Shown in pieces: positions 57,027 through 63,535 of a stretch of DNA of 64,000 bases; the stretch's first letter is position 1; each line of letters opens with the position of its first letter. The stretch is from the sequence record MZ501268.1; one strand, written 5' to 3'. Made by a program: the position numbers and the translations under genes. Under the pieces are notes generated by a model. That model did no database searches, was not told the origin of the DNA, and worked only from the letters and a program-made list of their open reading frames with translations.

Positions 57027-57869
57027 ATGCGTCAATATTTAGATGGTATCCGTTACATCTTTGAGAACGGGTCACAACGTGGAGATCGTACCGGTGTTGG
57101 CACACTGTCTATCTTCTCAATGAAACAGTCTTACGACCTGCGTAAAGGGTTTCCCCTCGCCACCAGTAAAAAGATCCGCTTCGACTATATTGCCGAGGAG
57201 TTGATCTCTTTCCTATCCGGCGATCCCGATATGGTGGGTATCAAGATCTGGGATGACTGGCGGGTCAAAGACGAAGTTTCTCGTGAAGTTCCAATGGATA
57301 ACCACGAGCGTCTGGAAGCCTGGTGTAAATTGTCTGACCTTAAGCATGAGGTCGCCATGACACAGCTCAACGGTATGGGTAGCGCTTCTGCCGGCCATGC
57401 ATTTCTTGACCAGCAGGGTGTTCCGCGTAATAAGAAAGTTGTGCTGGTAGAAGAAGGTGCGTTGAATGCACCATACGGACCAGCGTGGCGTGCGTGGAAG
57501 GGACGTCAGGGTGAAGTGCATGATCAGATCGGCTATCTGCTTAAGTTGCTTAAAAACAATCCTACGAGCCGTCGTATGTTGTTGTCCGCCTGGGATCCGG
57601 CGAACATGCCTGATGAATCCATCAGCCCGCAGGATAACGTGGTTGATGGCAAACCATGCCTGACTCCTTGCCATTGGGCGTTTGAGCTGTACACCGATGA
57701 AATACCATTGGATGAACGTGAAGCGTATTGCCGGGATCACATGCCGTTGCTGTATGAATCTATTCAACAGGCAATGAGTTTTCCGGAATATCGGTCCGTG
57801 GATTTGGAAGGCTTACTGGATAGTAAAGAAGTCCCGCGTTATTACCTGGACCTGAAGTACCATCAGCGT
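57027..57869 (+). CDS. thyA: thymidylate synthase exon 1
   Basis: DRTGVGT, FPLATSKK, ELISFL, IWDDW, YGPAWR, SRRMLLSAW, LTPCHW, YHQR. Confidence 0.95.
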
Positions 57870-58724
57870 AAACATGACTGCGCCCTTGTAGCGTGAGCTA
57901 CATTGAAATTAACTTTCCTTAATGCTGGAACACCTCAACGTTCTTTTGACCACAACGCAATCGGTGACGATAATCGTGATGGTTTCAAAACAAAAGAATT
58001 ACGGTCAATCAGCAGCTAAATCACCTCAGGTTTATATTACACCCGTGAGTTAATAAGGAGTGTAATATGCTAAACGATCCATTGGTTAGGCGTAATTTAT
58101 CTAAGCGCTGGTACAACATGATGTCAAGGTGTAATAACCCCGATCATGCTAACTACAAAACGTATGGCGCTATTGGTATTATGGCCAGCTTACGTTGGCG
58201 GGATAAAGAAACGTTTATTAAAGACGCAATCACATTACCTGGTTATAACCGTGAGTTACTGCTTAGCGGTCAGTTATGGTTAGACAAAGATTTTATTGTT
58301 CCAGGTAATAAAGTGTACGACGTCGCTTTCTGTTGTTTCTTATTGAAAACAGAAAGTAATCAATACAAACCTCAGCAAATGAGACCATTCGTTGCGATAG
58401 CTCCAAATGGCCATGTTTACAAAGGTAATAACCAAAGTGAGTTTGCCAAAACACATGGGTTATCCCAAACAACTATAAGTGAATGTCTTGTTGGAAAACA
58501 TGCGGGTCATAAAGGTTGGGTGTTTAGGTTTGAGTGATCAGTTCAGAGACTATCGAAAGCCCCTGCAGGAACATAGATGGGGAGCGAGTAGAGTAGGCGA
58601 GCAAGTGCCGCCGAAAAGGGAAAGGGTCTTCATGGATGAAGATCGTGATATAGTCCGACACCCTCAGTGATGGGGGCTGCGATTAAATTCGCGGAGATGG
58701 AGTAACGTCTATCTTGAACAGTTG
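57870..58724 (+). mobile_element. group I intron in thyA
   Basis: Exon 1 ends in U, intron ends in G; P (AATGCTGGAA), Q (AATCAGCAG), R (TCAGAGACTA) and S (GATATAGTCC) core elements; P1, P2 and P10 pairings found; splicing restores QR-SCD. Confidence 0.92.
58067..58537 (+). CDS. intron-encoded HNH-type homing endonuclease with C-terminal NUMOD1-like HTH
   Basis: WYNMMSRCNNP..YKTYG..GI..W, LDKD..GNKVY..C.F..N, then SEFAK.HGLSQTTISECL.G..HKGW. Confidence 0.85.
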   Translation: MLNDPLVRRNLSKRWYNMMSRCNNPDHANYKTYGAIGIMASLRWRDKETFIKDAITLPGYNRELLLSGQLWLDKDFIVPGNKVYDVAFCCFLLKTESNQYKPQQMRPFVAIAPNGHVYKGNNQSEFAKTHGLSQTTISECLVGKHAGHKGWVFRFE

Positions 58725-59021
58725 AGTTGTGATTACATGGTTGGCGTGCCATATAACATCGCCAGTTATGCGCTACTTCAGACTATGTTCGCAGCTACGG
58801 TGAATATGGTGCCGCGTATCTTAGAAGCGGACATGACCAACGTCCACATCTATAACTTCCACAAAACGAATGCCATCATGCAGGCAAGTCGTACCCCACG
58901 TGAGTTACCGACATTAAAGGTACTCACACACCGGGACAAACTGGAAGACTACCGGCTTGAAGACTTCGGGTTGTATGGTTACGACCCACAAGGGTTTATT
59001 AAATATGAGCGAGCGGTATAA
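58725..59021 (+). CDS. thyA: thymidylate synthase exon 2
   Basis: SCDYMVGVPYNIASYALL, NVHIY..H, ELPTL, YDPQGFIK. Confidence 0.95.
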   Translation, partial: SCDYMVGVPYNIASYALLQTMFAATVNMVPRILEADMTNVHIYNFHKTNAIMQASRTPRELPTLKVLTHRDKLEDYRLEDFGLYGYDPQGFIKYERAV

Positions 59022-59561: not shown

Positions 59562-60890
59562 ATGGCCGTATTAAAATCTAAAACAGCTTTGTTCGACTGG
59601 TATGTGGGTCTGAAAACAAATCTTAAATCCAACAAAATCACTGTCATCGAATTTGAGAAAGAAATCATCGATACCATCGTTGATTTCTTTGAAGGCAAGA
59701 AAGAAGTTACGCCGACCAAAGCTGACCTGATTGCCGATATCTTGAATGCCGTGGGATATGATCATCTCTTCACAAAGAACTGGTCTGTGCATCTGGCGTA
59801 TGTACTGGGCGAAAGTGGCGCCACCACTAATGAAGTCGTTAAGACAGCTCTGGATAACTTTACATCGGTCCAGGTCGCAGGTTGGCAAAGAAAAGAAAAG
59901 GAAGCTGCAAAGACTTTCCCTGAGTTCACAACTTACGATGCATTAAAGAACTGGTTACATAGCACGTTTCCAGCTATTAATGCTAACCGTAATCTGGGGC
60001 AGCCTCAGCAGGTCATCGATTATGCTATCGTTGGGGAAGTAATCGCCACAAAGCTAGGCAAATTGAATAAGCTGCTTGATCCTGCCGATCCACAGCACTA
60101 CCGTAACATCGGGATCATCGATCAGTTCGTGTCCGTGTTCACCGCCATGCCGTTCCCGTTGGAAACTTACGGGTTGCTTATCGAAGTACTTCACGACCTT
60201 TACACTAACCCAGCAGTAACGCCTAATATCACAGCTTTTGTACACAGTAAAGATGCGGCTAAAGAGCTGGTTGTACAACCCTCTGCTGCTGAAAGAGCAC
60301 GGCAGCGTGCAGATCATTGGATGTCTCAGAACCCTGGACACATCAGTATACTGGAAACTTTTGCTGAACGTTACTGTCCTGTCACCACTGCACTGCAGCT
60401 TGCCCGCTCAGAGCTCACTGACTTTATCGTAGAAACTGCAAGATCTGTTCTAATCGCCATAAGTAATCCAGTCACGGCGGAGTACTCTGCGTTCTTACTG
60501 ACCGGTACGCGCACCGACACGCTTGAGTTGGATAACGGTGTTGTTGCGATCAACACCCAGATCAAGTCAAACGGCGTAGTGGAACTTCGTATCTATAAAG
60601 AATACACTACCCAGTTAGTTCCCCGTGGACTTAACGCTAACTATCAAACACAAAGAAAAGAGAACTACGCACACAGTCAGCAACCTGGATTTGTGGGTGC
60701 TGTTATTGACCAACTGATTCACATGTGGCCAATCCCTAATCGTCCTCCACGTTACGATAATAATCGTTTTAATAATGGACCGACGGTTCTTGATGACGTG
60801 TTGGGTAAAGTCGGTCTTGTGGCCGATGGGTATAACGTCGTTGCGAGTGTCGCTGCACTTGATGATTATCTGATGGTCGTCCTGCACTAA
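59562..60890 (+). CDS. hypothetical protein, paralog family member 1
   Basis: 442 aa; N-term WYVGLKTNLKSNKITVIEFE shared with the 60954 and 62253 ORFs. Confidence 0.6.
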   Translation: MAVLKSKTALFDWYVGLKTNLKSNKITVIEFEKEIIDTIVDFFEGKKEVTPTKADLIADILNAVGYDHLFTKNWSVHLAYVLGESGATTNEVVKTALDNFTSVQVAGWQRKEKEAAKTFPEFTTYDALKNWLHSTFPAINANRNLGQPQQVIDYAIVGEVIATKLGKLNKLLDPADPQHYRNIGIIDQFVSVFTAMPFPLETYGLLIEVLHDLYTNPAVTPNITAFVHSKDAAKELVVQPSAAERARQRADHWMSQNPGHISILETFAERYCPVTTALQLARSELTDFIVETARSVLIAISNPVTAEYSAFLLTGTRTDTLELDNGVVAINTQIKSNGVVELRIYKEYTTQLVPRGLNANYQTQRKENYAHSQQPGFVGAVIDQLIHMWPIPNRPPRYDNNRFNNGPTVLDDVLGKVGLVADGYNVVASVAALDDYLMVVLH

Positions 60891-60900
60891 ACCAATCCTA

Positions 60901-60925
60901 GGGGGGGGGGTAATCCTCCCCATTT
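60901..60925 (+). terminator. terminator hairpin
   Basis: GGGGGGG-GTAAT-CCTCCCC-ATTTC. Confidence 0.55.
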
Positions 60926-60953: not shown

Positions 60954-61529
60954 ATGAACGAAGAATCAATTGATCAGTGGTTTCATGAGTTAAAAAGTAA
61001 AGTGATGTGGATGACCATCACCGTTGATGAATTTCAGGTAGCACTTGTGAATTACTTAACCGACTTACTGCGGGGGTACGAGACAGATTCATCGTTCGAT
61101 AAAGAGACCACTGTCAGTGCTGTCAACCATTACTTCAAGTTGATGACCGAGGTTCAGTTCAATGCTTGTTACAGTTTGACTATTTTCAGACTGGTAACGG
61201 GTACTGATATCCATGACCGGGGTATGAACACAACCCATATCCTTGAATGGCTGGCTGCAAACCAACCAGCGACCTCGCGTTATCATGAGAAGCCGGTAAT
61301 GGCGGTCTCACTCGACACCCTAGTTACGACGAAATGGTCATCCGTGGTTGCATTGTTCTATCAGGATATTCTGACTGAACTGACCAGGGATGATAAACAC
61401 ACGTGGACAGAAGCCACAAAGATCTTAGTCGCAAACCTGGCAATCCCTACCCAGGAAGTGGTTGATATCGTACACTGGTTAGTTGCCCGCACTGTTGACG
61501 CCACCCATACCCCAATTATTCCGGAGTAA
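60954..61529 (+). CDS. hypothetical protein, paralog family member 2
   Basis: WFHELKSKV..ITVDEFQ..VNHYFKLM. Confidence 0.6.
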   Translation: MNEESIDQWFHELKSKVMWMTITVDEFQVALVNYLTDLLRGYETDSSFDKETTVSAVNHYFKLMTEVQFNACYSLTIFRLVTGTDIHDRGMNTTHILEWLAANQPATSRYHEKPVMAVSLDTLVTTKWSSVVALFYQDILTELTRDDKHTWTEATKILVANLAIPTQEVVDIVHWLVARTVDATHTPIIPE

Positions 61530-62252: not shown

Positions 62253-62966
62253 ATGAACAAAGAAACATACACTGAATGGTTCAAAGGTCTTAATGCGCGT
62301 TTGGCTGATGGCACTTACACCAACAAAGTATATGAACGCCTCATCATTGATAATTTGCAGTCGTTAATCGTTAAGCGCTATAACGACAGACACAACCGCG
62401 ATCAAATGACCTGGGCTGAGCACTACGAGCTAATTAACCATTACTTCGAAATGTTAATTGATGCGCCGCTGACCAATACTGGAGTAGTAACCCTGCTGCT
62501 GTCAGTCAGGACAAACTTCAGGATGTTGCCTGCCGCGCGGGAATTGGCTGCTAAACATAAAACCACAATAATTGATCCCAACTTTTTAATGCCTGGGCGG
62601 TTAATGGATAACCCTGGATTGCTGCGGAAGGTGGTTGTGCGCGGCACTGAGACAATGGTAGATCGTCCGGTGATCACACAGGTCAACGAGGCGGATGATG
62701 AGATGACTATTGCACTGCCATGGAAACTGGCGCTGCACGTCTATAAGGGATTCCTGGTAAAAGAGCTGATGGCGAATCATGACTTCAGCTACCATGATGC
62801 TTACAAGTATATCACTGATCATTATAGTGAGTATGATGAGTTGTTAGATAAACTCATCCAGGATATCATTACTCATAAGGAATCGCATTTAGTGTCAGTC
62901 GGTGGCGGTATCACCGCAGCAGGGACGGGTCTGGTTGTGAGTGGAGTTATTAAACCGGAGGAGTAA
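62253..62966 (+). CDS. paralog family member 3 fused to an RNAP beta-prime-like fragment
   Basis: N-term WFKGLNARL..INHYFEML; aa 121-206 GLLRK..G..RPVIT..LPWKLA..LLDKLIQDII resemble the beta-prime switch-2/dock region. Confidence 0.65.
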   Translation: MNKETYTEWFKGLNARLADGTYTNKVYERLIIDNLQSLIVKRYNDRHNRDQMTWAEHYELINHYFEMLIDAPLTNTGVVTLLLSVRTNFRMLPAARELAAKHKTTIIDPNFLMPGRLMDNPGLLRKVVVRGTETMVDRPVITQVNEADDEMTIALPWKLALHVYKGFLVKELMANHDFSYHDAYKYITDHYSEYDELLDKLIQDIITHKESHLVSVGGGITAAGTGLVVSGVIKPEE

Positions 62967-63535
62967 TGGAAAAGGATATACAAACGACCTTCAAGGAACG
63001 TTACGGGGATTTAATTAAACCAGGTAACGAAATTACTGTTCCTTTATACCACATCAGTTTTCATGGTGATCGTGAAGGCATCTGGATACCTAAAGTACCG
63101 GACTCCCCTTTCGACACACCAAAGAACCCAAGCATCTCTTACGAAATGCCAATACCTCGTATTTGTGTAGCCCCTTCTATCGAGCAATGTTTCTGGGCAA
63201 TCTACCCGAACATCTCTCATTACTTTGAGGAGGAGAACTACGCTGCGATGTGCTTTACGGTGTACCGACCCATGTTAAACGCGAACAGTGCGGTGGTAGA
63301 CACTGCCGCATTAACTCAACGGCAGTTAGTGTGTGATGCGCATGTCACCGGAGAGCACTGGTTGCTTGGCGAGACCTTCATGGAGATTGTTGATCAGATT
63401 CGTATCAATAATACCTCTGCTGGGGAATTCGTCAAGTATCGTCCGTATAACTCTCAGGAAGGTTATGAGTGGGAACTTGCGCCTAAGAATGTAGTCTATA
63501 CTCAATTAACCTATTGTCCCTGCGGTAAGGAATAA
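62966..63535 (+). CDS. putative ADP-ribosyltransferase-fold protein
   Basis: LYHIS .. PKVP .. PRICVAPSIEQC .. DAHVTGEHW ordered like ART H/S/E strand motifs. Confidence 0.45.
   Translation: MEKDIQTTFKERYGDLIKPGNEITVPLYHISFHGDREGIWIPKVPDSPFDTPKNPSISYEMPIPRICVAPSIEQCFWAIYPNISHYFEEENYAAMCFTVYRPMLNANSAVVDTAALTQRQLVCDAHVTGEHWLLGETFMEIVDQIRINNTSAGEFVKYRPYNSQEGYEWELAPKNVVYTQLTYCPCGKE

Follow-up and report, generated by a model that had tools for sequence, protein, structure and literature searches.

A non-catalytic two-module protein of Agricanvirus jumbo phages with a beta-prime N-like segment of RNA polymerase and a nearly invariant C-terminal tail

Erwinia phage AH06 (MZ501268.1, 275,293 bp; host Erwinia billingiae) is a member of Agricanvirus, as is the characterised nucleus-forming phage RAY. 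We have analysed positions 1-64000 of its genome (the window, 64,000 nucleotides), focusing on gene 78 (AH06_78), whose GenBank product name is 'DNA-directed RNA polymerase subunit beta-prime'. A preliminary description, made from the sequence alone, had singled out the open reading frame (ORF) at 62253-62966 and quoted its residues 121-206, and the sequence reads as given there. The protein matched PHROG 11276, an uncharacterised Agricanvirus family, over its full length (amino acids, aa, 1-237 versus profile positions 1-233 of 233), with an E-value (E) of 3.9e-90. We found gene 78 at one syntenic place in 17 phage records (AH06 and 16 Agricanvirus relatives) and, besides, in ten further protein clusters defined at 90% identity, nine of them from metagenome or run assemblies only. 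The full-length family comprises 11 clusters of 233-270 aa that are 47-100% identical; nine are on contigs of 89-288 kb, the size of a jumbo phage, and two are known only from short contigs. All 11 clusters have an intact frame, free of stops and frameshifts, and start with MNKETYT, and about 70 alignment columns are invariant. A ribosome-binding-site-like GAAGGA lies upstream of the gene. Gene 78 is a real, selected gene; its product is a non-catalytic accessory protein with two modules, found in nucleus-forming jumbo phages of the Agricanvirus type. Its layout is as follows, with model confidence given as the predicted local distance difference test (pLDDT) of AlphaFold2:

62253..62966, plus strand: gene 78 (AH06_78), 237 aa plus stop, member of PHROG 11276
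62253..62567, plus strand: N-terminal helical domain (N-domain), aa 1-105, six helices, pLDDT 85-98
62568..62594, plus strand: variable linker, aa 106-114, placed by the alignment, low pLDDT and the identity profile
62595..62885, plus strand: module very probably derived from beta-prime N, aa 115-211, placed by hhalign to the gp55 family and by the match to PDB 7OGP_A
62613..62630, plus strand: switch-2-like motif PGLLRK, aa 121-126, with G122 and R125 invariant and K126 nearly so
62664..62684, plus strand: RPVITQV, aa 138-144, counterpart of the first double-psi barrel strand (R-x-V-I-T/S)
62715..62876, plus strand: dock-like helical sub-domain, aa 155-208 (LPWK.ALHVY.GFL.K.L ... LLDKLIQDII), pLDDT 89-96 in model 2
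62877..62963, plus strand: C-terminal tail, aa 209-237 (KESHLVSVGGGITAAGTGLVVSGVIKPEE), Gly/Ala/Thr/Val-rich, nearly invariant, pLDDT below 40

We are highly confident that the central module is a segment of a beta-prime N subunit of the phiKZ gp55 type. The preliminary description had pointed to the beta-prime N of phiKZ-like non-virion RNA polymerases (nvRNAP), and the profile searches bear this out. In PHROG 2987, the gp55-type family labelled 'RNA polymerase beta subunit', positions 257-368 of 478 were matched by aa 90-209 of gene 78 (E 7e-13). A profile of the 11-cluster family, searched against PDB sequences, retrieved phiKZ gp55 (7OGP_A, aa 113-208 versus 290-385, E 5.7e-10) and AR9 beta-prime N (7S01_d, E 7e-5); the similarity to bacterial beta-prime in PDB was not significant alone (E 0.16-0.52). 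When the family was compared with 29 gp55-family proteins, hhalign gave a probability of 98.7% (E 2.1e-16), pairing aa 115-211 of gene 78 with aa 292-387 of AH06 gene 240. The gene 78 profile was also run against 1.84 billion representative proteins and yielded 231 matches at E<=1e-3; among the matches listed, nearly all are beta-prime N subunits of 370-570 aa, matched at around residues 260-370. In Pfam, where the preliminary description had proposed a comparison with RNA_pol_Rpb1_2, gene 78 has no beta-prime match, and PF00623 (RNA_pol_Rpb1_2) is absent at E<=10, while most of the gp55-family proteins found carry it, including all near-full-length ones down to the homologue P0052. The one Pfam match, to SH2_2, scored 20 bits against a cut-off of 27 and, being sub-threshold, was taken as chance.

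The structural comparison with nvRNAP that the preliminary description had proposed was also made. Two AlphaFold models of gene 78 (pLDDT 71 and 76) gave phiKZ gp55 and AR9 beta-prime N as their top PDB matches in Foldseek, with weak E-values (0.05-1), and the dock helices superpose on 7OGR_A with 1.3 A over 68 columns. The protein retains the switch-2 segment, the R-x-V-I-T strand, the start of the LPW helix and four dock helices. Its PGLLRK motif lines up with G299, R302 and K303 of gene 240, and V140 and I141 are invariant over the gene 78 and gp55 families combined. Switch 2, the barrel strand and the dock had already been named in the preliminary description, which missed the most constrained part of the protein, the C-terminal tail. 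Proteins of the phiKZ gp55 type (7OGP, 7OGR and 8QUE chain A; gene 240; RAY gp223) are homologous to gene 78 from switch 2 through the first barrel strands to the dock, sharing the G, R, V-I and P positions; what sets gene 78 apart is an N-domain unrelated to theirs and an invariant tail that they do not have. The same segment is matched in AR9 beta-prime N (7S00 and 7S01 chain d), which is a full catalytic subunit, and an AR9 alignment reaching into the N-domain of gene 78 was not upheld by the profile-profile test.

At its N-terminal side, gene 78 is missing some 290 residues of gp55, including the Zn-ribbon/clamp region; C72, C87 and C90 (gene 240 numbering), invariant in the gp55-family alignment, have no counterpart in it. 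At the other side, the match ends before RNPTL (gene 240 aa 396-400) and NADFDGD (aa 433-439), motifs in which R396, N397, P398, L400, D435, D437, G438 and D439 are invariant in the same alignment, and gene 78 terminates 26 residues past the last aligned residue, aa 211. The DFDGD of phiKZ gp55 is found at 417-421 and, colinear with that protein, gene 78 stops two or three residues short of the catalytic loop. With the Zn-ribbon/clamp region, RNPTL and the magnesium loop NADFDGD all absent, the protein is unable to polymerise. The alignment with gene 240 therefore agrees with the earlier statement that the match stops ahead of these motifs and cannot be catalytic.

A full-length beta-prime does exist elsewhere in the genome, as had been anticipated. 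Gene 240 (188773-190260, 495 aa) is an intact gp55 orthologue with both RNPTL and NADFDGD; it is a full-length member of PHROG 2987, and its end-to-end alignment with PhiPA3 gp054 shows 31% identity (E 9e-76). The module of gene 78 is about 29% identical to this subunit. Searching the whole AH06 genome with gp55 proteins by tblastn, we recovered gene 240 and the gene 78 fragment, and nothing else. We also scanned the annotated polymerase genes 162, 172, 267, 268 and 287, leaving out gene 171, and found all five to be full-length members of their own families. Gene 162 (35660-36334 of L006, 224 aa), annotated as a beta subunit, is full-length within PHROG 3233, a family of about 225 aa, and is not an orphan fragment. 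The families of genes 75 and 79, from the same region as gene 78, were unrelated to the gp55 family in hhalign (probability 0.2%), and the idea of a split gene was rejected, with no complementary piece found. Since gene 240 is intact, the scanned polymerase genes are full-length and the neighbours are unrelated, gene 78 is an extra partial copy rather than a piece of a split subunit or an assembly error.

The tail KESHLVSVGGGITAAGTGLVVSGVIKPEE (29 aa) is 83-100% identical over all homologues of the 11 clusters. Compared with AH06, all but its closest relative show 39-45% identity in the N-domain and 48-60% in the beta-prime module. Between AH06 and each relative, the tail accumulated 12-18 synonymous and 1-4 non-synonymous differences. 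The ratio of non-synonymous to synonymous differences per site (pN/pS) was 0.08 for the tail, 0.34 for the module and 0.41 for the N-domain. As synonymous changes are many and non-synonymous ones few, the constraint on the tail acts at the protein level and not on an RNA or DNA signal; third codon positions vary freely and Rfam finds nothing, and the tail was rejected as an RNA or DNA element. No second copy of it was present in a six-frame translation of AH06. Its use as a module elsewhere was also discarded, the sole outside match (P0065) being a gene model of eukaryotic style that runs across a stray piece of phage DNA.

The tail alone is predicted to be disordered; it has a small-xxx-small pattern with charges on its flanks. 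Its Kyte-Doolittle mean over 19 residues was 1.35-1.50, below the threshold of 1.6, and its summed Hessa-scale value was estimated at about +4 kcal/mol. This hydrophobicity, under the usual membrane threshold, is too low to call a transmembrane helix with confidence. A Rossmann-like GxGxxA motif was rejected because, judged from sequence only, the tail is too short for the fold. From its place in the alignment, the tail may occupy the position of the RNPTL hairpin of the barrel. In one homologue, P0004 (L012 6001-6813), a 25-residue extension beyond the tail contains 'PDFDGA', which recalls the lost catalytic motif, probably by chance.

As for the N-terminus, the preliminary description had called it unrelated to RNA polymerase and part of a local paralogue family, and both statements hold. 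The N-domain alone gave an hhalign probability of 0.4% against gp55, that is, no relation. Some hidden Markov model (HMM) alignments run colinearly from the module into the N-domain, but a diverged upstream part of gp55 was rejected on this profile-profile probability. Among all 1385 AH06 ORFs, the N-domain HMM matched gene 76 (E 1.4e-8) and gene 75 (E 0.004); a third match, to a 77-aa raw ORF on the minus strand (E 0.004), was taken as chance. BLASTP gave an E of 5e-5 for gene 76, and hhalign against the gene 75 family a probability of 85% (E 6e-6, aa 2-99). The two genes lie upstream of gene 78:

59562..60890, plus strand: gene 75 (442 aa), of which the first ~110 aa (59577-59891) are an N-domain paralogue and the remainder is unrelated to beta-prime
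60954..61529, plus strand: gene 76 (191 aa), of which the first ~85 aa (60954-61208) are an N-domain paralogue

These comparisons place the N-domain of gene 78 in a lineage-specific paralogue family with its neighbours 75 and 76, the latter being restricted to the lineage of AH06 and its nearest relative, L014. Two further relatives have ORFs of about 105 aa by their gene 78 homologue (L011 5676-5996 and L010 6779-7093) that resemble the N-domain alone in a weak alignment, and that are probably stand-alone copies of it.

We measured the identity between AH06 and L014 in windows of 60 nucleotides over 59.5-64 kb. The two genomes are 92-100% identical, mostly 95-100%, with one exception:

~62590..62920, no strand: recombination patch, 53-70% nucleotide identity to the nearest relative L014

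The patch spans the beta-prime module and the first half of the tail, and its left edge is marked by the linker, whose length differs among homologues. Within it pS is saturated at 0.79, in contrast to 0.04 in the N-domain of gene 78, which indicates replacement by a distant allele rather than adaptation in place. The identity matrices of N-domain and module are repeatedly discordant within the family, so exchange at the linker is common. Between AH06 and phage Ea35-70, gp55 is 96% identical and gene 78 54%.

Pieces of beta-prime with similar limits were found in other phages. Halocynthia phage JM-2012 encodes TSMG0162 (L022 4645-4899), a protein of 84 aa consisting only of the strand-plus-dock segment, which matches positions 288-362 of the gp55 profile (E 2e-13 to 6e-13) and is 47% identical to aa 288-363 of TSMG0136, the gp55 orthologue of the same phage. 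Like AH06, JM-2012 keeps this orthologue intact, with NGDFDGD. A metagenomic protein, P0148 (L023 776-1156), is a complete ORF of 126 aa present on four contigs and likewise consists of the strand-plus-dock segment alone; it matches positions 268-367 of the gp55 profile (E 1e-22) and has neither RNPxL nor DxDGD. Gene 78, TSMG0162 and P0148 share one C-terminal boundary, the end of the last dock helix, although the two small proteins lack the N-domain and the Gly-rich tail. In a tree of the 96-column segment, the gene 78 family is monophyletic on a long stem (1.26), with no supported sister. TSMG0162, by contrast, was copied recently from the gene of its own phage (47% identity); their origins are independent. 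On this sequence evidence, the dock piece of beta-prime has been freed independently in at least three lineages. A word-index search with the dock-segment alignment for more small dock proteins gave no return, which weighs neither way.

Around gene 78, RAY and six metagenomic relatives share one gene order, in which members of the families of genes 75, 78, 79 and 77 follow one another. Gene 75 is restricted and fast-evolving like gene 78 (34% identity between AH06 and RAY). The gene that follows gene 78 in AH06 is:

62966..63535, plus strand: gene 79 (189 aa), whose start overlaps the gene 78 stop (TAATG); unrelated to beta-prime

The overlap between both genes is usual among the relatives. 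The gene 79 family is more widespread than that of gene 78 among jumbo phages and is not tied to it, with members also in Salmonella SA002, Klebsiella FBKp24 and Eowyn, Yersinia phiR1-37 and JM-2012. It is well conserved, with many invariant Cys, His, Trp and Pro and no Pfam match, and the phiR1-37 relative is annotated as 'phage structural protein'. Further upstream, the thymidylate synthase gene thyA is split in two (57027-57896 and 58722-59021) by an insert with an HNH/NUMOD homing-endonuclease ORF (58067-58537). L014 has a GIY-YIG/NUMOD3 ORF at this site, while RAY and five further relatives have the gene in one piece; no group I intron was detected with Rfam at E<=0.1. Just 3' of gene 75, a G-rich hairpin followed by a T-rich stretch (60901-60921) is terminator-like in a simple scan, the regional count of such hairpins being modestly above the shuffled expectation. 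A scan for sigma-70-type promoters stayed at chance level. Finally, the stray fragment under the P0065 gene model is about 650 bp of Agricanvirus-like DNA (L018 9284-9925; GCA_054859325.1, JBTAPL010000082.1, 4.7 Mb) among retroelement genes in a eukaryotic-looking assembly. In this DNA, the C-terminal 53 aa of a gene 78 homologue are followed by a gene 77 homologue in three tblastn pieces, and the model joins the fragment to unrelated exons; contamination, chimerism or a genuine insertion would each account for it.

What gene 78 does can be proposed only tentatively, and the leading candidate is a putative polymerase-linked role, as a mimic or an adaptor. The protein would act by binding: the folded dock sub-domain, together with the unstructured switch-2 segment, strand and tail, would offer a partner the face that is otherwise shown inside the polymerase. 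Aa 112-150 and 213-237, which have low pLDDT despite their invariant residues, probably fold only on a partner, to judge from the models. Candidates for this partner would be the beta-like subunit, the orthologue of the sigma-like gp68, a factor of the RNA exit channel or a nuclear import factor. In phiKZ, import of the polymerase subunits takes place in partly assembled complexes, each subunit relying on others to be imported, and gp68 contacts gp55. The N-domain might tether the partner, or the gene 78 protein might compete for it; the invariant tail would then be the main contact with a conserved partner, and the rest of the module would be exchangeable between phages. A more specific scheme, which we consider speculative and rather unlikely, is that the free dock copies form a recurrent, hitherto unrecognised class of polymerase-linked accessory proteins of nucleus-forming jumbo phages, in which the Agricanvirus targeting domain and a tail strand at the RNPTL site of a partner complex would control nvRNAP assembly, import or the loading of a promoter factor.

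Several observations weigh against a polymerase-linked role. The module is 48-60% identical among phages whose gp55 is 89-96% identical, which is odd for something that has to fit a conserved polymerase. Its fast evolution and exchange count against a partner as conserved as the polymerase, while the invariant tail counts in favour of a conserved one. The identity of about 29% to the phage's own gp55, together with this fast evolution, argues against a decoy that simply imitates that subunit. The swapping of cassettes and the rapid change are more reminiscent of a host-interaction gene. Besides, the structural match is local, its E-value is weak, and the fit of model 2 is partly circular because gp55 sequences were in its alignment.

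One could argue that gene 78 is directed at the host or its defences, the module and tail binding a host protein, for example an RNA polymerase subunit, a sigma factor or an immune sensor, so as to shut off host transcription or blunt a defence system. The variable module would track host variation. The location of gene 78 in a variable, early-type block of fast-evolving, lineage-specific genes such as gene 75, the swapping of the module as a cassette between genomes that are otherwise 92-100% identical and the discordant relationships of N-domain and module all fit this explanation, as does the fact that RAY leaves the host chromosome undegraded (Prichard 2023). We nevertheless hold it to be unlikely: the closest relatives of the module are phage subunits, its similarity to bacterial beta-prime being non-significant, the saturated pS of the patch reflects replacement and not a burst of positive selection, and no defence system is known that senses the dock segment. 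Doubtful, too, is that beta-prime ancestry is mere history in a scaffold exapted for an unrelated job, with the hydrophobic, Gly-rich tail as its working part. The tail would, for instance, anchor the protein weakly to a membrane or mediate self-association, and genes 75, 76 and 78 would combine the N-domain with differing cargo domains. In agreement with this, the tail is the most conserved part and shows the small-xxx-small pattern with charged flanks, and the N-domain is also found on genes 75 and 76 and probably in the ~105-aa stand-alone ORFs. However, the hydrophobicity of the tail does not reach the usual membrane threshold, and G122, R125, V140, I141 and P156, all shared with true beta-prime, stay invariant, which suggests that the ancestral surfaces still matter.

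Two simpler origins can be set aside with far more certainty. That gene 78 is a decaying, functionless duplicate, a pseudogene remnant of gp55, is highly improbable: compared with gp55 it is shortened on either side, its branch is long and it has no catalytic motifs, but its frame is intact in the 11 clusters, pN/pS stays at 0.08-0.41 with the ~70 invariant columns, the start and the overlap with gene 79 are conserved, and GAAGGA lies upstream. Equally at odds with the data, and hardly credible, is the idea that gene 78 belongs to a further split but functional beta-prime, or is a fragment of the true gene misplaced in assembly. Split polymerase genes are common in jumbo phages, and the adjoining thyA is interrupted by a homing-endonuclease insert; nonetheless, genes 75 and 79 are unrelated to beta-prime, tblastn finds only genes 240 and 78, and the scanned polymerase genes are full-length. 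Mis-assembly, the objection raised in the preliminary description, is excluded by the recurrence of the locus in independent genomes, that is, in the 17 phage records and the ten further clusters. The cyanobacterial gamma/rpoC1 (8SYI chain D) and the split phage subunits are, like gene 78, partial beta-prime polypeptides, but they rebuild a catalytic enzyme from complementary pieces, whereas gene 78 has none and the full set is elsewhere in the genome. An analogy for the putative mimic or adaptor role is poxvirus K3L, a look-alike of eIF2-alpha: a shortened viral copy of one domain that binds the partner of the larger protein. Unlike in K3L, the protein copied by gene 78 is the virus's own.

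The homology between gene 78 and beta-prime is already visible in the GenBank name, in PHROGs and in one figure legend, in which RAY gp070 and gp223 are both listed as homologous to phiKZ gp055 (Prichard et al. 2023, where 24 RAY proteins were also localised during infection as green fluorescent protein fusions). The earlier claim that no such fusion had been described is thus not fully accurate, as the label and the legend precede it, both without analysis. Gene 78 is not discussed in a review of jumbo-phage polymerases or in the Agricanvirus genome paper. Within the literature that we could search, the architecture of the protein, its tail, its cassette behaviour and the recurrence of the dock piece in other phages appear to be new.

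Jumbo-phage polymerases do without alpha and omega, the subunits that serve in assembly. Work is still under way on how the split pieces meet, reach the inside of the phage nucleus and take up the sigma-like fifth subunit, and a small, selected protein with only the dock face of beta-prime would be a ready-made probe of what reads that face. If it is instead targeted at the host, gene 78 would represent a new kind of phage modulator of transcription or immunity, made from the phage's own polymerase.

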